Of a stretch of 64,000 nucleotides of DNA, positions 2,978-51,599 are shown piece by piece (position 1 is the first letter of the stretch; every line of letters begins with the position of its first letter). The notes beneath the pieces are model-generated. The model was given only the letters and a program-made list of their open reading frames with translations, was not told the origin of the DNA and searched no databases. Both the position numbers and the translations under genes were made by a program. The DNA lies in the IMG/VR virus record IMGVR_UViG_3300024520_000047, positions 181,875 to 245,874 of that record; one strand, 5' to 3'.

Positions 2978-3340
2978 ATGAAACTTTACAACACCCTACA
3001 TTCACTTATATTAGAAGTAGCTTCTAGGGAAGACACCAAACAAGCTATTGAAAATAAATTAAGGACACTTATTTATTATGAAGGTGATACCGTTAATAAC
3101 CCAGGGTGGAGAACAATCGAACCAGTTTGTGCTGGGACAACAAAAAGAAATAATCCAGTTCTTAGAGCATGGCAAACAGAGGGGGCTACAGATACCGAAG
3201 TTCCTGGTTGGAAATTTTTTAGATTGGATAGGATTAGAAATTGGCAACCGACACTGGATGAGTTTACTGAAGCCCGTCCTGGTTACAACCCAAACGGCGA
3301 TAAAAGTATGAATCAAGTGTGGTTCAACGCAAAATTTTAA
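2978..3340 (+). CDS. Stand-alone WYL-domain-like protein
   Basis: RTIEP...LRAW...WKFFRLDRI matches the WYL signature (RxVxP...LxAx...RxFRxDRI); no HTH domain. Confidence 0.7.
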   Translation: MKLYNTLHSLILEVASREDTKQAIENKLRTLIYYEGDTVNNPGWRTIEPVCAGTTKRNNPVLRAWQTEGATDTEVPGWKFFRLDRIRNWQPTLDEFTEARPGYNPNGDKSMNQVWFNAKF

Positions 3341-3349
3341 TAAAAAGAA

Positions 3350-3970
3350 ATGGATAAACTACAACAATCTTTATTAAACGCTAAAAGATTTATGGAGCAC
3401 GATGCATTAAAAAGTGCCTCCCGAACAGCATCAACACCACGGACACAAGAACCTGAAATGGGTGAACCAATTATGGCTCACCAAGTACCAAATATGAATA
3501 TAAATGAAAGTAGTATTCCGTCAGCGGCACCAGAAATGACAATGGCACCGAAATCAAAAATGACTAAAGAATCTATTTTAAATTCCAAATTGCCCGACGC
3601 GATAAAACAAGCAATGTTAAGTAATCCAATACCTGACCCTATCCCAGATAACGCCTTATCACCCCAATTCATAAATGAAGTTAGTAAAAAAATGAATTCA
3701 CAAGACTACAGTATAAGTAATATGAGAGCAACGGCTAATTCAAACGTTAAAAAAGAAATCGTTGACCCCATACCGTCATTAATTCCAGACCCACCACCTA
3801 CCCCAGATTCAAGTTCTTTAAAAGAAACAATTAAAGAATGTTTAAAGGAAATTTTAGAAGAAGAAAATTTAATCGTTGAATCTAAAAATCTAAAAGAAAA
3901 TTTACAATTACGAGTAGGAAACAAAGTATTTACAGGAACTATTAAAAATGTAAAAACAATAAAAAAATAA
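3350..3970 (+). CDS. Hypothetical Pro/Met-rich protein
   Basis: 206-aa ORF, last gene before terminator; several LxE motifs near C-terminus. Confidence 0.7.
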   Translation: MDKLQQSLLNAKRFMEHDALKSASRTASTPRTQEPEMGEPIMAHQVPNMNINESSIPSAAPEMTMAPKSKMTKESILNSKLPDAIKQAMLSNPIPDPIPDNALSPQFINEVSKKMNSQDYSISNMRATANSNVKKEIVDPIPSLIPDPPPTPDSSSLKETIKECLKEILEEENLIVESKNLKENLQLRVGNKVFTGTIKNVKTIKK

Positions 3971-7824: not shown

Positions 7825-9353
7825 TGAGTATTAGTATTATATATAGCACTCGTAAAATTGACCCACACTTTAAAGTTCATGCAGAAAAAAGTTGTGGTAT
7901 CCCTAAGGTAGAAATTATTCCCATAGAAAACCCTAATGGAATTTCATTAGCTAAAACATATAATGACGCATTAAAAAAAGCTTCCTACGATATTGTGGTC
8001 TTTACTCATGATGACATAATTTTTGAAACTCGTAATTGGGGACCCAAATTATTAAAGTTATTTAAAAAAAATCCAGAGTTCGGAGTTATCGGAATAGCGG
8101 GTACTACAGACTTAATCGATGGTAGGTGGTGGACTATCAAGGAATCTATGAATGGTATAGTTAGTCACCAGCATGAAGGAAAAAAATGGACAAACACATA
8201 TTCACCCCATCAGGGAAATAAAATAACTGAAATGGTCGTATTAGATGGGTTATTTTTTGCTATAGATAAAACTAAAATTAAACATGTATTTGACGAATCT
8301 TTCGAAGGATTTCATTTTTATGAAATACCATTTTTCTTTAAAAATTATTTAGACGGCGTTAAATTAGGATTAACCACATATTTTAAAATTACACACCTAT
8401 CTATAGGAAGAACCAATGAAGAATGGGAACAAAATAAAATTAAATTTGAAGAAAAATTTAAAGACTCATTACCTGTAAGGTTAACCAATAATAAAACTTT
8501 TGACGAAAAATTAAATTTCGATAGAGATAGTATTGGTTTCGGGATGGTAACCTACAAAGCAGAGCATAGAATAAAACAAAGTGCTTTTACCGTACCTAAA
8601 TGGGTAAAAAATTTTGTTATTGTAAATGACGGAACACCGTATGACAAAGATTCCTATCCCTCTCATGCTCACATAATTCAACATGAAACCAATAAATCTG
8701 TTGGTGCTGCGAAAACAACCGCTATTAATCATCTTTTAAAAACTGACTGTGAACATATTTTCATAATGGAAGACGATATCTTAATAAAAGATGAGGGGGT
8801 GTTTGAAGAATACATAAAGCATTCTTTAATTTCGGGAATAAAGCATTTAAATTTTGCACTGCACGGTCCAGCTAATAAAAAAGGTAGTAAGGGATTTAGT
8901 ACATTAGACGATAGACAAGATGTGGATGGTGAACCAAACCCACGAATGATTATACCCTACCCAGAAAAAGATGTAAAAATAGCCTTATACCCAAACTGTG
9001 TAGGTGCATTTTCATACTATTCCAGACCGGTATTAGAAGACCTAGGTGGGTTTGACCCAGTTTTTAAAAATGCTTGGGAACATGTGGAACACACATATCA
9101 AGCCATTAAAAAAATGTATCACCCAGCATTTTGGTATTTCGCGGATATTGATGGGAGCTGGGAGTATTTAACCGACATACCAAATTCAATAGAAGAAAGT
9201 ACTATTGCTCACACACCAACATGGAATGAAAATTTTAGAAAGGGAACATTGTGGTATAAAAAGAAACACGGAGTATCCCCAACAGAAACCCCTGTTGCAA
9301 CACCAGAAATGGTTAAACAACAATTACAAGTAATATTTCAAAATAGAGGATAA
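7824..9353 (+). CDS. Two-domain GT-A (GT2-like) glycosyltransferase
   Basis: N-domain FTHDDI...LDGLFFA; C-domain VNDG...FIMEDDI; two DxD-type motifs. Confidence 0.8.
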   Translation: MSISIIYSTRKIDPHFKVHAEKSCGIPKVEIIPIENPNGISLAKTYNDALKKASYDIVVFTHDDIIFETRNWGPKLLKLFKKNPEFGVIGIAGTTDLIDGRWWTIKESMNGIVSHQHEGKKWTNTYSPHQGNKITEMVVLDGLFFAIDKTKIKHVFDESFEGFHFYEIPFFFKNYLDGVKLGLTTYFKITHLSIGRTNEEWEQNKIKFEEKFKDSLPVRLTNNKTFDEKLNFDRDSIGFGMVTYKAEHRIKQSAFTVPKWVKNFVIVNDGTPYDKDSYPSHAHIIQHETNKSVGAAKTTAINHLLKTDCEHIFIMEDDILIKDEGVFEEYIKHSLISGIKHLNFALHGPANKKGSKGFSTLDDRQDVDGEPNPRMIIPYPEKDVKIALYPNCVGAFSYYSRPVLEDLGGFDPVFKNAWEHVEHTYQAIKKMYHPAFWYFADIDGSWEYLTDIPNSIEESTIAHTPTWNENFRKGTLWYKKKHGVSPTETPVATPEMVKQQLQVIFQNRG

Positions 9354-15543: not shown

Positions 15544-16171
15544 GTCGGGTAATCATTGGGTTAGGTTTATTGTGGAGTGGTTTTCTGGTAAACCAACTAA
15601 AGGTATGAGCAAAGACGATAAACCCATATATATTAATTTAGTTAATAAGGATACTCTAAGTCATGTCTCTGGTACTGATTATATACTTTTTAAAAATCAT
15701 TGGTACTCAAACATTAAACCTAATGAAAACTTAATTTTAATAGTTAGAAACCCCAAGGAAGCTATTATGAGACATAAAAATAAATTTACTGATGATGATT
15801 TAAAATGGTTTATGGGTTTAATAAAATCTTTTCATAACCATAAAGGTAATAAAATGTTAATTTATTATGAAGACCTGCTAACTCAACCCGAGAATAACAT
15901 AGAAAAACTTTTAAAATTTTTAAATATTTTAGATAAAAAAAAATTAAGTATTTTTATGAGTAAGTATGAAGAATTATTTAATGAATCTATAAATGTTTAT
16001 GATAATACAGGTAAAAAAGAAATAATTTCAGGTGGTAAAGGTAGGGTTTCTAAGACTAAGGGTAAGAAATTAAATTTCCATAGTAATTCATTAACCAATA
16101 AAGATAATCAAAGATTTATAAATTATTTGAACAAGAGTGGGGTAAAAAAATACATAATTAGATATGAATAA
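15515..16171 (+). CDS. Sulfotransferase (family 1-like)
   Basis: ISYPRSGNHWVR and IVRNPKEA PAPS-binding motifs; IYYEDLL. Confidence 0.75.
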   Translation: MKNHLISYPRSGNHWVRFIVEWFSGKPTKGMSKDDKPIYINLVNKDTLSHVSGTDYILFKNHWYSNIKPNENLILIVRNPKEAIMRHKNKFTDDDLKWFMGLIKSFHNHKGNKMLIYYEDLLTQPENNIEKLLKFLNILDKKKLSIFMSKYEELFNESINVYDNTGKKEIISGGKGRVSKTKGKKLNFHSNSLTNKDNQRFINYLNKSGVKKYIIRYE

Positions 16172-17192
16172 AAAAGTTTTAATCACAGGCATCAATGGTC
16201 AAGATGGTTCATATCTTGCAGAATTATTATTAGAAAAAGAATATGAGGTGTGGGGTATCGTAAAAAGAAATTCGGTTTCTGAAACACAATCAACTAGGAT
16301 TGAACATCTATTAGAAAATACACGTTTTAATACTGAATATGCAGATTTAACTGATATGGCCTCCTTAATTAGGGTATTATCTAAGATACAACCAATAGAA
16401 ATTTATAATTTAGCAGCCCAATCACATGTTAGAATTAGTTTTGACCAACCAATTTATACCGCAAATGCAACAGGATTAGGAACACTTAATTTATTAGAAG
16501 CTTGTAGAATGGTTTCACCTAATTCTAAAATATATCAGGCATCATCTTCTGAAATGTTTGGTAATAATATTGACGAAGATGGTTATCAAAGAGAAACAAC
16601 ACCAATGAACCCCGTATCACCTTATGGTTGTGCAAAAGTATTTTCATATAACATTTGTAGAAATTATAGAAATTCATATGGGATGAAAATATGGAATGGG
16701 ATATTATTTAACCATGAGTCACCAAGACGTGGAACTAATTTTGTAACTAATAAAGTGGTTAAAGCAGCGGTTAGGATAAAATTAGGGTTACAATATAATT
16801 TACAACTCGGTAATATGGATGCAACTAGAGATTGGGGCCATGCAAAAGATTACGTTGAAGCTATGTGGTTAATGTTACAAACAAAAAATCCAGATGATTA
16901 TGTTTGTGCTACTGGTGTTTCCCACTCAGTCAAAGATTTGGTTGAATATACATTTAATTCATTAGGTTTAAATTATCAAGATTACATTCATAAAAATGCA
17001 AAACATTTCAGACCTGAAGAGTTAAAAAATTTAAAAGGTGATTCTAGTAAAATAAGAAATGAGTTGGGCTGGGAGCCTACATATACATTTGAATCTATGT
17101 TGGATGAAATGGTAGAATATTGGATTGATTATTATGGATTTGATTATTTGCGATTAGAAAACGGAAGCTTAAGATTTCAAAAAAGAAATTAA
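16164..17192 (+). CDS. gmd: GDP-mannose 4,6-dehydratase
   Basis: ITGINGQDGSYLAE, NLAAQSHV, SPYGCAK, GILFNHESPRRG, RDWGHAKDY. Confidence 0.97.
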   Translation: MNKKVLITGINGQDGSYLAELLLEKEYEVWGIVKRNSVSETQSTRIEHLLENTRFNTEYADLTDMASLIRVLSKIQPIEIYNLAAQSHVRISFDQPIYTANATGLGTLNLLEACRMVSPNSKIYQASSSEMFGNNIDEDGYQRETTPMNPVSPYGCAKVFSYNICRNYRNSYGMKIWNGILFNHESPRRGTNFVTNKVVKAAVRIKLGLQYNLQLGNMDATRDWGHAKDYVEAMWLMLQTKNPDDYVCATGVSHSVKDLVEYTFNSLGLNYQDYIHKNAKHFRPEELKNLKGDSSKIRNELGWEPTYTFESMLDEMVEYWIDYYGFDYLRLENGSLRFQKRN

Positions 17193-43861: not shown

Positions 43862-45727
43862 TTATTTTACTTCTTCATATTCTACATCTGTAGTTTCAGG
43901 GTCATCTTCAGGTGGTGGTGTTGTGTCACCTTCAGTTTGTTCGTATAACTTACTAGAAATAGTTTGCCATTTGGAATTAAGGTCGTCCATATTAACTTTA
44001 ATTTCATCTAAATCTTCATTTTTGTGAGATTCCCTTAACTTATTAACTGATTCTTGGAGTAACTGTTTATCGTCGTCATTTAATTTTTCATCAAACTCAG
44101 TAATTTGTCTTTCCGTTTGAAAAATCATGGAATCCGCCTCATTTAGTTTATTGATTTTTTCTAACTTTTCTGAATCCTCTTTAGAGTTTTTCTCAGCTTC
44201 CATTTTCATTTTATTAATTTCTTCCTCATTGAGACTATTACCAGATTCGATTCTAATTTTTTGTTCTTTATTAGTTCCTTTATCTTTAGCACTAACACTT
44301 ATAATACCATTTGCGTCAATATCAAAAGTGACCTCAATTTGGGGAATACCTCTTTGTGCAGGTGGAATATCAGTTAATTGAAAATTACCTAATTTTCTAT
44401 TATCCATAGCCATTGGCCTTTCTCCTTGTAGTACATGAATATCTACTGCGGGTTGATTATCTATAGCTGTAGAAAATACTTGGGATTTACTCGTTGGGAT
44501 TGTAGTGTTTGCATCTATAAGTTTAGTCATAACACCCCCCATAGTCTCAATACCTAATGAAAGTGGTGTTACATCTAAAAGTAATACGTCATTAACATCT
44601 CCCGTAAGAACACCCCCTTGTATTGCAGCACCCATAGCTACAACTTCATCTGGATTTACACCTTTAAATGGTTTCTTTTTAAAAAATTTCTCAACAGATT
44701 TTTGTATAGCTGGAATTCTGGTAGACCCACCAACTAAAATAACCTCATCAATGTCTCCAATAGTTAAACCACTATCTTTAAGTGCTTTTTTACATGGGAC
44801 CATTGTTTTCGTCACTAATTTATCAATCATAGATTCGAACTTAGCTGTAGTTAGTTTTTTAACCAAGTGCTGGGGTCCTGTACTATTAGCACTTAAATAT
44901 GGTAAATTGATATCTGTGGAATTTGAAGACGACAATTCTATTTTAGCTTTTTCAGCCGTATCTTTCAATCTTTGTAAAGCGATAGCGTCTTTACTTACAT
45001 CTATTCCAGTATCTGATTTAAATTCATTAATTAACCAATCAATTATAATTTCATCAAAATTATCTCCCCCAAGATGTGTGTCTCCATTAGTAGAGAGTAC
45101 TTCAAATACACCACCACCTATTTCAAGAATAGAAACATCAAATGTTCCACCACCCAAATCGTAAACCACAACTTTTTTGTCTTGATTTTCATCTAAACCA
45201 TAAGCTAATGCCGCTGCGGTAGGTTCGTTTATAATACGTAAAACATTTAACCCAGCAATTTCACCAGCTTCTTTAGTAGCGTTTCTTTGGGAATCATTAA
45301 AATAAGCGGGTACTGTAATAACAGCATCCGTTACCTTAGTTCCTAAATACTCCTCTGCCGTTTTTTTCAAATTTTGTAAAACTATAGCTGAAATTTCTTG
45401 TGGTATATATGACTTTCCATCCACACTAATTTTAATACTATCATTAGTGCTTTTTTCTATTTTATATGGAATTTTACTTATTTCTTTTTTTATTTCACTG
45501 AATTTACTTCCAATGAATCTTTTTACCGAATAAATGGTATTTTCTGGATTAGTTACTGATTGTCTTTTTGCCGAGTCACCAATTACTCGTTCATTGCTTT
45601 TAAAAGCAACAATAGAAGGTGTTGTTCTTTTACCTTCTAAATTTACTATGACTTCAGGTGTACCACCTTCAATTACTGAAACGCATGAATTTGTGGTTCC
45701 TAAGTCAATCCCTATTACTTTTGACAT
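43862..45727 (-). CDS. dnaK: Hsp70 chaperone DnaK
   Basis: [42 protein letters not shown]; C-terminus DVEYEEVK. Confidence 0.98.
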
Positions 45728-45763
45728 ATTTTTATTTTTTTTATTGTCTTTTATTGTTTTATG

Positions 45764-45791
45764 AATATAAATTCGTTAATCTTATTGTCAA
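45764..45791 (-). promoter_or_regulatory. Putative dnaK promoter
   Basis: TTGACA-N16-TATATT on minus strand. Confidence 0.5.
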
Positions 45792-45814
45792 TAAGTATAC
45801 CGTTTAATTATTTA

Positions 45815-45848
45815 TGACATACTGTCACCATATACTGACATATTGTCA
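45815..45848. promoter_or_regulatory. Tandem palindromic operator-like sites between divergent dnaK and clpC
   Basis: TGACA-TAC-TGTCA (45815-45827) and TGACA-TAT-TGTCA (45836-45848), 21 bp apart. Confidence 0.65.
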
Positions 45849-45897
45849 CTACTTGATTTTAAAAGGTATTAATGTATTATTTATAATAAAAAATGTT

Positions 45898-47949
45898 ATG
45901 ATAGAACCGACAGGAAGTTTTGCAGAATTTGAAAAGGGTAAACCCCAAAATTTACCTAAAAAAGAATCACTTTCATCGAAAAGTGGAACACCAGTACTAG
46001 ATAATTTTTCAAGAGATTTGATAAAATATGCGGAAGAAGGAAAATTAGACCCCGTGGTTGGGAGAGAAAAAGAAATTAATAGAATAGCCCAAATTTTATC
46101 ACGAAGAAAAAAAAATAATCCAGTATTAATAGGTGAACCAGGGTGTGGAAAAACCGCACTAGTAGAAGGGTTGGCTATGAAAATAAATGAAGGTAAATGT
46201 CCTCGTAATTTATTAGATAAAAGAATTGTGGGATTAGACCTAACATCCATCGTAGCTGGTACCAAATATAGGGGTCAGTTTGAAGAAAGAATGAAAGCTA
46301 TAATTGATGAATTAGTAGAACATGAAGAAATTATAATTTTTATTGATGAGATTCATACCGTCGTTGGAACCGGAAATGCTTCTGGTTCATTGGACGCCGC
46401 CAACATATTTAAACCCGCATTAGCACGGGGGGAGGTACAATGTATTGGAGCAACCACCATAAATGAATATAGAGAAAATATTGAAAAGGATGGTGCTCTA
46501 GAAAGAAGGTTTCAAAAAATAATAGTCGAACCCACAACTGTAGAAGAAACATTACAAATACTTAAAAATTTAAAAGAACGTTATGAAGAACACCATAAAG
46601 TTAATTATAGTGATGAGTCTTTAGAAGCTTGTGTGTTATTATCTGAAAGATATTTGACTCACAGAGAATTTCCAGATAAAGCTATAGATATTATGGATGA
46701 AGTGGGAGCTAAAGTACAAGTAGAATTAGAATACCCTAAAGAAATTGAGGATTTAAGACGAATACTTAGTGATTTAAAAGAAGAAAAGGTAGAGGTGGTA
46801 AAATCACAAAAATATGAAAAAGCCGCGGAATTAAGAGATAAGGAACGCACAGTTTTAGGTACTCTTGAAGAAAAAAAATTGGCGTGGGAAATGGAATTAG
46901 AAGATAGTCGTAAACCAGTAACGGAAGATGATATATATGATGTAGTTTCCCAAATAACAAAGATACCCATATCTAGATTAGACACTAATGAAACAAAAAC
47001 ATTACTGAGTTTAGAGAGCTCTCTTCAAAAAATTGTAATAGGTCAAAATGAAGCTGTCAAGAAAGTTGCAAGAGCCATCAGGCGTAATAGGGTTGGGATT
47101 AGAGATAATAAAAAACCAATTGGTTCTTTCATGTTTTTAGGTTCCACGGGTGTTGGTAAAACTCACTTAGCTAAAGCGATTGCACGTGAGGTGTTCGGTA
47201 ATGAAGATTCTTTAATACGGTTAGATATGTCAGAATATAAAGAAAAATTCAATTCAACAAGATTGATTGGTTCACCACCTGGATATGTTGGTTATAATGA
47301 AGGGGGTCAACTAACTGAAGCTGTTCGCAAAAAACCCTATTCGGTAATATTGTTAGATGAAATAGAAAAAGCTCATTCCGATATTTATGACCTATTATTA
47401 CAAATATTTGATGAAGGGCATATAACTGATAGTTTAGGGAGAGTCATTAATTTTAAAAATACCCTTATCATTATGACCTCTAATGTGGGAGCTAAACAAA
47501 TGGGTGAATTTTCAAACCCTTTAGGGTTCACAACGAAAGATTCTGAATCAAGAACAGAGGAAGCGGTATCACAAATATTGAAAAAAGCACTAAAAAATAC
47601 CTTTAAGCCAGAATTTCTAAATAGGGTAGAACATAATATAATATTTAAAAGTTTAGAAAAAAAATCTATTAGTAAAATAGTAAGGTTGGAACTGAATCAC
47701 TTACAAGAAAGATTAAAAGAAAAAAAATACCACATGACTTTTGATAAAAAGGTAACTGATTTTATTGTAAAAGAAGGGTATGACGATAAATTCGGTGCAA
47801 GACCAATAAAAAGAGCAATTCAAAATAAGTTAGAAGATTTTATTTCTGAAGAAATATTAAAAGGAAATGTCGTGGAACACAATACCTACACTATGAGAAT
47901 TAATAAAGATAATGAAATTACTATAAACGAAGAAAGTGATAATGAGTAG
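45898..47949 (+). CDS. clpC: ClpC-type AAA+ unfoldase lacking the N-terminal Clp_N domain
   Basis: Two Walker A motifs ([16 protein letters not shown]), UVR coiled coil ([10 protein letters not shown]), ClpP-binding LGF loop; start moved from 45814 to 45898 as the extra 28 codons cover the operator. Confidence 0.88.
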
Positions 47950-47953
47950 TTTA

Positions 47954-50341
47954 TTAGGCAATAACTGCTCCATATGAACCAGTAACTATCCAACCAGCAT
48001 CTGCATCCCAAAGTAAATCAATCGAATCTCCCGCATCTGTTAGTGTAAAACTACTATATGGGCTAGTCCACGTATTAATGGTCATGGAACCAGTAAGTGA
48101 ATCGTCATACACATAAATAGTCAATCTTTGTCCCTGACTACCATTAGGTAAAGACCCCGGAGCCGGGGACGAACCTATTTGTGCTATTCTCCAAATAGAT
48201 TTTTTACTTATAGAGGGTGAAACATCGGCATCTGTAGTTACTATCCCTGTTTTATGTATTTGAGCTTCTGCGATTAAAGTATCACCTATGTAAGTAGTAC
48301 TTAATGTAGTTACCCCTGTGCCCGTTAAATCACCATCAACAACAGCTTCAGGGCCTATTGTAACGGGTGAACAACCAGTTATGGTAGACACGTATAATGT
48401 TCCACCAAACTCACATAAATCTACATTGGGCATATAAACTGTATCGTCGGCATTTCCTGTAATGCCAAACCCACCAAGTACTGCACTTCTATCTCCATTG
48501 ACTATGGAGTTAAAAGAATGTGCAAATGAAGTTAAACCTGAAGCTGTGGAACCACTACCCCCCGCGTGGGAACCTGAACCAGCCGCTACAGTTTTAATAT
48601 TTTGAGCATGAGACGCGTCTCCTGACGCTATGGGCCCAATATCGGTTGGTCCTGGGATGCCTATCTCAATATTTGGTCCTCCTTCTGCATGTGCCCACTT
48701 ACCACTAGCAATTGTATTATGTCCTTGAGCGTGAGAACCATAATTACCACTTGCAATCGTATAACCACCTTCAGCGTGAGAACCTGTACCTGAGGCTAGA
48801 GTATTATATCCTTCAGCGTGACCTACTGCCTCTGTTGTTGCAGAGGTTTGGTATCCCTCAACGTGTGAATAATCAGCGTCTGCTGTAATAATTGTCTGAT
48901 ATCCTTCACCATGTGAATAATTACCTATAACTGTAGTGTAAAATCCTTCCGCGTGAGAATAATCACCATGAGCTTTTGTTCCTCTTCCTTCCGAGTGTGC
49001 TGTAACTCCAGTTGCTTCTGTTTGGAATCCTTGAGCGTGACAATAATATTTTGCTCCACTGCCCGCTAATGTCCCATATCCTTCTGCGTGAGACATATGA
49101 GTCATAGCAGATGTTTGGGCCCCTTCAGCGTGAGACCCAATACCTAAAGCATACCCACCAATATAGAGACTAGCCCCAGGAAGTATATAACCACCTTCAG
49201 CGTGAGAACAAGCTCCTATAGCTAGTGACCCATATCCTTCTGCGTGAGAAACTTGTCCACTAGCTAAGGTAAAACCACCTTCTGCGTGAGCACCCATTGT
49301 AGTTGCTGAAGTAGGTGCTATTGTAGGTAAGTCTCCAGTTTTTATTGAGCCACCTTCAGCGTGTGAAGCAGTACCACTTGCGAGATTCCCCCACCCTTCA
49401 GCGTGAGAATAGTTTTCTATTGCTCTTGTATAAGACCCTTCAGCATGGGACGACAGTCCACTAGAAATTGTAGTGTGTCCTTCAGCGTGTGAAGCTATAC
49501 CATACGCTTTAGTATCTATGCCTTCAGCGTGTGAACCATAACCTATCGCTGTCGTATCTTTACCTTCAGCGTGAGATGTGTCTCCAGTTGCCCACGAACT
49601 GTCTCCCTCCGCATGAGAATAGTTCCCTTCAGCTTGTGTACTTATACCTTCCGCATGTGAACTATTACCATATGCTTGAGTGTCTGTACCTTCAGCGTGT
49701 GAACCCTGTCCTGTTGCTATAACACCAGTTTTCCACCCATAACCTTCCGCGTGAGCACCTCTACCGATAGCTATATTAGTCGCCAACCCACCATCACTGT
49801 ACCCCTCAACGTGTGAACCATAACCTATCGCTGTCGTATCTTTACCTTCAGCATGAGATGAAGTTCCCGTCGCCCAAGTGTTTTCGCCTTTAGCGTGAGA
49901 ATAGTTCCCTTCAGCTAATGTGGTACTTCCCCACGCTATAGAATTAATGCCTGTTGCGGATGAAGTAATATGTTGGATAGGACTATGTTCTGTAACAGCA
50001 TCTAAACACGCGTATCTATTATTTATATATAAATTAGTTATACAACTACCACTTCCACCACTAAATACAGTATCTGCGGGGTCTAATAGACCAAACATTA
50101 TCGTATCTCCCGAAATAAAGGTTGTAATTCCGCTGGTTCCTTGAAGTCGTCTAAAATTTAATGCCCCATCATTAGGGTTAGCTGTCTTACTCACATAGAG
50201 ACCTATACCACCAGAACCTAGATTATTTCCAATGGTATTATCTATTTTTTGACTTAAAATACTAAGATTACCATCTAACTCACCATGAGTTAATGCGTTA
50301 CTTTGGCTTAATCTTAAATAAAATGGAATTGGTAATGGCAT
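47954..50341 (-). CDS. Tail fibre/adhesin with ~30 SHAEG beta-roll repeats
   Basis: 14-aa xxTxAxGxxSHAEG repeats (YadA-head-like); N-terminal LTHGELDGN; TATTTAT at 50359-50365. Confidence 0.75.
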   Translation of the reverse strand: MPLPIPFYLRLSQSNALTHGELDGNLSILSQKIDNTIGNNLGSGGIGLYVSKTANPNDGALNFRRLQGTSGITTFISGDTIMFGLLDPADTVFSGGSGSCITNLYINNRYACLDAVTEHSPIQHITSSATGINSIAWGSTTLAEGNYSHAKGENTWATGTSSHAEGKDTTAIGYGSHVEGYSDGGLATNIAIGRGAHAEGYGWKTGVIATGQGSHAEGTDTQAYGNSSHAEGISTQAEGNYSHAEGDSSWATGDTSHAEGKDTTAIGYGSHAEGIDTKAYGIASHAEGHTTISSGLSSHAEGSYTRAIENYSHAEGWGNLASGTASHAEGGSIKTGDLPTIAPTSATTMGAHAEGGFTLASGQVSHAEGYGSLAIGACSHAEGGYILPGASLYIGGYALGIGSHAEGAQTSAMTHMSHAEGYGTLAGSGAKYYCHAQGFQTEATGVTAHSEGRGTKAHGDYSHAEGFYTTVIGNYSHGEGYQTIITADADYSHVEGYQTSATTEAVGHAEGYNTLASGTGSHAEGGYTIASGNYGSHAQGHNTIASGKWAHAEGGPNIEIGIPGPTDIGPIASGDASHAQNIKTVAAGSGSHAGGSGSTASGLTSFAHSFNSIVNGDRSAVLGGFGITGNADDTVYMPNVDLCEFGGTLYVSTITGCSPVTIGPEAVVDGDLTGTGVTTLSTTYIGDTLIAEAQIHKTGIVTTDADVSPSISKKSIWRIAQIGSSPAPGSLPNGSQGQRLTIYVYDDSLTGSMTINTWTSPYSSFTLTDAGDSIDLLWDADAGWIVTGSYGAVIA

Positions 50342-51442: not shown

Positions 51443-51516
51443 GCTCCCGTAGCTCAACTGGATAGAGCAACAGCCTTCTAAGCTGTAGGTTATAGGTTCG
51501 AGTCCTATTGGGAGTA
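51443..51516 (+). tRNA. trnR: tRNA-Arg (UCU)
   Basis: Full cloverleaf: GCTCCCG/TGGGAGT acceptor, ACAGC-CTTCTAA-GCTGT anticodon arm, ATAGG-TTCGAGT-CCTAT T arm; CCA not encoded. Confidence 0.95.
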
Positions 51517-51599
51517 CGTAAAAAATTTTGTAATATTCTTTGTATTGTCAAGTATTTATATTACATTTATAATTAGTTCTTTGAAAATATTTAAAATAT

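Follow-up and report, generated by a model that had tools for sequence, protein, structure and literature searches.

The window analysed here, a stretch of 64,000 nucleotides (positions 181,875 to 245,874 of the virus record IMGVR_UViG_3300024520_000047), is the last 64 kb of a single 245,874-bp record with 33% GC, classed as linear and with a CheckV completeness of 77%. It encodes a major head protein, a portal and a large terminase, as well as T4-type gp25, gp32 and prohead protease, which identifies it as a T4-like jumbo phage. A search for sequencing runs containing this phage returned only seawater DNA metagenomes and no RNA runs. Within the window, a 170-bp gap separates a dnaK gene on the minus strand from a divergent gene for a ClpC-like double AAA+ protein, and two short palindromes lie in this gap. 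The features of the locus are as follows.

43862-45727, minus strand: phage dnaK (Hsp70; Pfam HSP70, E 3e-257), 58-67% identical to Bacteroidota DnaK, the gene that the predicted promoter module faces.
45788-45802, minus strand: sigma-54-type -24/-12 promoter CGGTATACTTATTGA, predicted from sequence, with GG at 45801/45800 and TTGA at 45791-45788; the predicted dnaK transcription start is about 45776, giving a 5'UTR of about 49 nt.
45815-45827, no strand assigned: palindrome 1, TGACAtacTGTCA, the putative promoter-proximal enhancer/operator site, centred at about -45 from the predicted dnaK start.
45836-45848, no strand assigned: palindrome 2, TGACAtatTGTCA, a second site 21 bp (two helical turns) further upstream of the dnaK promoter, centred at about -66 and ending 4 nt before the -33 TTG of the clpC-like gene.
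45853-45882, plus strand: candidate sigma-A-type promoter of the clpC-like gene, with a -33 TTG (45853-45855) and a -7-like TATTATTT (45875-45882); a consensus match only.
45898-47949, plus strand: ClpC-like double AAA+ unfoldase lacking the N-domain (683 aa; Pfam AAA, AAA_lid_9, UVR, AAA_2 and ClpB_D2-small).

The first-pass annotation had described two phased 13-bp inverted repeats between divergent dnaK and clpC, and this observation is confirmed. Direct reading of the sequence shows TGACATACTGTCA at 45815-45827 and TGACATATTGTCA at 45836-45848, both perfect 5-N3-5 inverted repeats with starts 21 bp apart. The open reading frame of the clpC-like gene formally opens at ATG 45814, which would place the palindromes in coding sequence beginning MTYCHHILTYCH. 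However, this reading was rejected, since relatives start at the MIE.../MKLEG... codon and do not conserve that stretch. The real start is ATG 45898 (MIEPTG...), and the palindromes are therefore intergenic.

These are the only exact matches in the window. The whole 245,874-bp genome holds four exact matches, where base composition predicts about 0.26, and three of the four lie in the 4.2% of the genome that is intergenic. The third intergenic site lies outside the window, 56 bp upstream of a phage sigma70-family gene (Sigma70_r2 plus r4; genome 79688-80482, minus strand), and the 15-nt core of palindrome 2, ACTGACATATTGTCA, is identical to this site. A second Sigma70_r2 protein is also encoded in the genome. 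Additionally, three CTCTGACA...-type sites (one exact, two with one mismatch) occur within 180 bp at genome positions 16297, 16397 and 16475, outside the window and inside an ORF at 15818-17125 (minus strand), which may represent a peptide repeat. The palindrome resembles neither CIRCE, the TTAGCACTC-N9-GAGTGCTAA inverted repeat seen in other Bacteroidota groES loci, nor the CtsR operator, as reading of 45728-45897 shows no tandem direct heptad (A/G)GTCAAA.

Conservation in orthologous intergenic regions, which had been named beforehand as the point on which the operator reading could fail, was found by a wide margin. At least 597 relatives of the ClpC-like protein exist in viral contigs, and 80 viral loci were fetched by similarity to this protein alone (60-80% identity). 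The 79 loci with upstream sequence hold 49 exact sites in their 410-bp upstream stretches (1.5 per kb), against 2 in about 705 kb of flanks, and roughly 50 loci have at least one site with up to one mismatch. The six closest relatives keep the divergent dnaK and an exact copy of palindrome 1, while the second site, at +21, is degenerate in these 80%-identity relatives. More distant relatives keep pairs spaced 21-22 or 30-32 bp apart, corresponding to two or three helical turns.

The same motif is used in more than one system. A scan of viral contigs for the double palindrome gave 68 loci, and in about 18-21 of them arrays of 2-8 copies of TGACA-N3-TGTCA at 21-22 bp lie inside the linker of an HTH_36/DnaD_N-like initiator gene followed by dnaB. 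This represents a lambda-O-type origin within its own gene, in which the repeats are translated as SDNLS or VTxCH peptide repeats. In bacterial genomes, at least 120 stretches carry double sites, and among the 120 examined, whose proportions are only indicative, 59 lie next to TetR_N/TetR_C_19 genes with ABC, MFS or HlyD efflux genes and overlap the -35/-10 elements, which looks like a widespread TetR-subfamily operator. TGACA-N3-TGTCA is thus a common target of dimeric helix-turn-helix proteins, and context must decide which system applies.

In the phage, this context is provided by the dnaK side. Palindrome 1 is followed after exactly 13 nt by CGGTATACTTATTGA, and the site before the sigma-factor gene is followed after 13 nt by TGGTATGCTAATTGA. 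These are the only two intergenic matches in the phage genome to a sigma-54-type block ([TC]GG[CT]A[CT]-N5-TTG[ACT], or GG-N10-G(A/C)), and they give exactly two palindrome-13 nt-GGTAT-N5-TTGA modules. The block has the GG and TTG(C/A) spacing of a -24/-12 promoter, although its -12 element reads TTGA rather than the canonical TTGC, as it does in host chaperone promoters, including 30 of 30 host dnaK promoters. Reading the dnaK promoter as a sigma-70-like TTGACA-16-TATATT was considered and rejected, because the TTGACA is the -12 part of the conserved sigma-54 block and its spacing to TATATT is not conserved in relatives. A sigma-54 promoter was also looked for on the clpC-like side and not found, as GGTAT at 45865 lacks a -12 element.

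The same module is found in Bacteroidota chromosomes. Loci for dnaK were taken from 151 Bacteroidota genomes, and all 30 fetched loci have the block TGGCA(C/T)A-N4-TTGA(C/T) 50-80 bp before the ATG. Seventeen of the 30 have the palindrome (up to 1 mismatch) within about 160 bp upstream, against 7 such sites in the remaining roughly 153 kb. Before htpG, examined in 16 of these genomes, 13 loci show a palindrome about 13 nt before GGTAT-N5-TTTGA, eight being exact to TGNCA-N3-TGNCA and five having C for the first T. A pattern scan for the composite (TGNCA-N3-TGNCA, a gap of 11-41, then GGYAY-N5-TTGA) gave 14 hits in 16 genomes and none with the reversed control pattern, and every hit precedes dnaK, htpG, clpB, grpE or groES. 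One genome uses TGCCA-N3-TGGCA, a symmetric change that keeps the dyad. In contrast, the -24/-12 pattern alone gave a mixed set of lipoprotein genes and coding hits in host genomes, and the sigma-54-like blocks before lipoprotein genes carry no palindrome, so only the composite is specific to chaperone genes.

The 13-nt spacing of palindrome 1 in the phage is also seen in host htpG, dnaK and clpB modules. The spacing between palindrome and promoter follows the helical repeat. In host dnaK loci, the distances from the palindrome to the GG are 13, 23-24, 35, 45, 55-56, 67 and 75-77 nt, that is 13 plus multiples of about 10.5, and in phage relatives distances of 13, 35 and 44 were read by eye. 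Such phasing is characteristic of an upstream activator that must face the promoter complex. Moreover, the module and HrcA exclude each other in this sample: HrcA is found in none of the 16 module genomes, while all 19 genomes with CIRCE before groES have it.

In viral loci, 19 composite modules were found, against 0 in reversed-sequence controls. They stand before dnaK orthologues, before hsp20-family small heat-shock genes, and before genes for 126-154-aa proteins with two UVR motifs that are transcribed divergently from the clpC-like gene (for instance, 3396-3776, minus strand, 3321-3755, minus strand, and 7942-8406, plus strand, of the fetched viral loci L144, L146 and L017, respectively). 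The UVR protein may be an adaptor or a substitute for the missing ClpC N-domain. In the phage studied here, the modules stand before dnaK and the sigma-factor gene, which suggests that a phage sigma factor would be expressed through host sigma-54. An unrelated 116-kb phage contig (IMGVR_UViG_3300028888_000074) carries several palindrome pairs next to canonical sigma-54 promoters (TGGCAC-N5-TTGCA), so use of this putative enhancer by phages may be wider than one family.

The clpC-like gene itself has a Bacteroidota sigma-A-type promoter by consensus. In 30 of 48 distinct orthologous loci, a TTG starts 3-7 nt after the proximal palindrome, and many of these show a (T/C)AnnTTTG-like box about 20 nt further on. 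A sigma-54 activator cannot drive such a promoter, and coupling of the clpC-like gene to the palindromes is therefore plausible but inferred only.

Part of this picture has been described previously. Start-site mapping in Flavobacterium psychrophilum by Guerin et al. 2021 (PMC9723704) found typical sigma-54 -24/-12 ('SM4') promoters before groES-groEL, lon, dnaK, grpE-dnaJ, htpG and clpB, with the activators unknown and three proteins with a sigma-54 interaction domain in the genome. A 2025 survey reports that sigma-54 promoters are enriched before chaperone genes in Bacteroidota (PMC12316311). The -24/-12 block and the gene set are the same as those found here, whereas the upstream palindrome and its 13 + 10.5n spacing were not seen in these papers, and the present case is a phage copy that faces phage genes. 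Literature searches for the motif string and for an enhancer of Bacteroidota heat-shock promoters found no description of the palindrome, although an incomplete literature collection means that this is not proof of novelty.

Searches for a protein that could bind the palindromes gave no candidate in the phage, within the estimated 77% of its genome that the record represents. HTH_36 (by Pfam and by a custom HMM), TetR_N and HTH_8 gave no hit, and PF00158 hit only the ClpC-like D2 domain. Pfam tallies of 174 small ORFs showed no classic transcription factor among the at most 25 families listed in each. Indications of a Bacteroidota host are indirect, consisting of a CHU_C (T9SS) domain protein, -33/-7 promoters with A-rich leaders and no Shine–Dalgarno sequence, and the DnaK identity.

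In the host module genomes, 2-11 enhancer-binding proteins are encoded, and three genomes have only two. One of those two consists of a receiver plus AAA+ with no DNA-binding domain, while the other begins directly with the AAA+ domain, thus lacking a sensor and resembling PspF, and ends in a Fis-type HTH (HTH_8). The latter is encoded in a conserved miaB-activator-lptE-x-secG-groES-groEL neighbourhood and is the orthologue of the F. psychrophilum gene annotated as a probable sigma-54-dependent regulator next to lptE. A full-length ortholog (57-100% identity) is present in all 16 module genomes, while HrcA genomes give only weaker, mostly partial matches. This makes it the leading candidate, but the association is confounded by phylogeny. 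In addition, its recognition helix is identical in the genome that uses TGCCA/TGGCA half-sites, and covariation between the HTH and this variant was looked for and not seen, so that nothing of this kind ties the protein to the site.

Taken together, the element is best read as the upstream half of a host-type sigma-54 heat-shock promoter module that the phage has copied, and this cis-regulatory identity is regarded as very likely. The specific mechanism is only somewhat more likely than not. In this view, a host dimeric helix-turn-helix protein, most likely the sensor-less activator, would bind the palindromes, assemble on the phased sites, which lie on the same face of the DNA, and use ATP to open the sigma-54 holoenzyme complex at dnaK. 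Phage chaperone expression would therefore follow the host's proteotoxic-stress signal, and the clpC-like gene, whose own promoter abuts palindrome 2, may be co-modulated. The analysis itself establishes the sites, their conservation, the composite architecture, its identity with the host chaperone module and the helical phasing, whereas the identity of the binding protein, activation rather than repression, dependence on RpoN and an AAA+ activator, the start site and any effect on the clpC-like gene are inferred from sequence alone. A site centred at -45 is also unusually close for an enhancer-binding protein.

The interpretation in the first-pass annotation, that the site is an operator for an unidentified host or phage regulator coupling both chaperone genes to heat-shock or proteotoxic stress, is thus supported in part. 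Its core holds, including the exclusion of HrcA and CtsR, but three refinements are needed. The regulator is most likely the host's, as no matching DNA-binding protein was found in the 77% of the phage genome that the record represents. The palindromes do not lie between two ordinary promoters, as had been proposed, but form the upstream half of a composite module facing dnaK. Finally, coupling of the clpC-like gene is less certain, since its sigma-A-type promoter merely abuts palindrome 2, which is the site that degenerates in the closest relatives while palindrome 1 is kept.

A broader reading remains tentative, being judged slightly less likely than not. It holds that TGNCA-N3-TGNCA, placed 13 + ~10.5n nt upstream of the -24 GG, is the enhancer of the sigma-54 heat-shock regulon that replaces HrcA/CIRCE in most Bacteroidota, bound by a sensor-less PspF-like activator encoded near groESL. 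A large family of marine and freshwater jumbo phages would then have captured the complete module, wiring their own dnaK, hsp20, a ClpC partner and, in this phage, a sigma-factor gene to the host's proteotoxic-stress signal.

These findings bear on heat-shock control in Bacteroidota, which is poorly understood, with neither the activator of the mapped sigma-54 chaperone promoters nor its DNA site known. The phage element, read together with its host counterparts, defines a precise cis-element (sequence, spacing and helical phase) and nominates one protein family as its binder. For phage biology, it indicates that a jumbo phage imports not only chaperone genes but also the host's predicted stress-responsive sigma-54 promoter and enhancer, and places its own sigma-factor gene under the same control, which would let infection-induced protein stress time part of the phage programme. 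The element also offers a host-prediction marker for uncultured phages and a compact, potentially stress-inducible promoter part for Bacteroidota genetics.

Parallels can be drawn with several systems. PspF of E. coli is likewise a sensor-less AAA+ activator with a C-terminal HTH that binds inverted-repeat upstream sites of a stress regulon, and the candidate could similarly be regulated in trans; however, the psp sites lie further upstream and use IHF, and the regulon here is cytoplasmic chaperones rather than membrane stress. HrcA/CIRCE also ties chaperone genes to protein-folding stress through an inverted repeat before dnaK and groES, but its sequence differs and it acts as a repressor at sigma-A promoters. 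Pho boxes and NtcA sites in cyanophages place phage genes acquired from the host under the matching host stress regulator, whereas here an entire sigma-54 promoter plus enhancer appears to have been copied, the regulon is proteostasis, and a phage sigma-factor gene is also wired in.

Among the alternatives, the one that survives best, though it is considered unlikely, is that the palindromes belong to the same host-type module but serve as an operator for a repressor, a functional analogue of HrcA/CIRCE or HspR/HAIR, possibly an RprY-like regulator, that holds the chaperone promoters down until stress inactivates it. Heat-shock regulons are often under negative control, the module replaces HrcA in these genomes, and palindrome 2 abuts the -33 element of the clpC-like promoter. 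P. gingivalis RprY has been reported to bind the groES, dnaK and clpB promoters and to repress them (PMC3646045). Additionally, in five host groES loci the sigma-54-like promoter TTGGCACGnCCTTTGA is followed about 25 nt downstream by CTGACA-N4-TGTCAG, a position typical of repressors, although the spacer is N4 rather than N3 and the site could be a different operator or a 5'UTR hairpin. On the other hand, the palindromes studied here lie upstream of the -24/-12 core without overlapping it, and their distance to the promoter varies from 13 to 77 nt yet keeps helical phase, which fits looping activators better than steric repressors. Sigma-54 promoters need an activator site in any case, and no other conserved upstream element is visible. 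RprY is a response regulator of the OmpR type, which binds direct rather than inverted repeats, and no motif is reported for it.

A phage-encoded regulator controlling a small phage regulon (dnaK, clpC-like, sigma gene) independently of the host factor is still less likely. Such a protein could lie in the unassembled 23% of the genome or belong to an unrecognised family, as most small phage ORFs have no Pfam match, and the phage sites are perfect and better matched to each other than the host sites are. Nevertheless, the whole composite, including the 13-nt spacing and the sigma-54 promoter, is shared with host chromosomes across many genera, the motif is conserved across phages that share only 60% protein identity, and no HTH_8, PF00158 activator, TetR_N or HTH_36 was found in the phage record.

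Replication-origin iterons, as in the arrays of other phages, are very unlikely: although the sites are phased palindromes about two helical turns apart, as in lambda O-type origins, no HTH_36 initiator was found in the 77%-complete record, only two copies are present, the sites always flank promoters of chaperone genes, the same module precedes chaperone genes in host chromosomes, and no strand switch or skew feature occurs at the site. A TetR-family operator is the least likely, as no TetR_N was found in the 77%-complete phage record, no pump or TetR gene is nearby, and the sites do not overlap -35/-10 elements in the way of the bacterial cases.

The wider genome carries an unusually large proteostasis set, comprising DnaK, DnaJ, ClpC-like, two ClpP, cyclophilin and FKBP, together with an Hc1 histone-like protein, ribosomal protein S21 and two Mom-like proteins. 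Within the window, a 795-aa protein with YadA-head repeats (47954-50341, minus strand) lies in a local GC island (44.7% against about 32%) and is probably a fibre or adhesin of separate origin. The only tRNA in the window is tRNA-Arg(TCT), at 51443-51517 on the plus strand.
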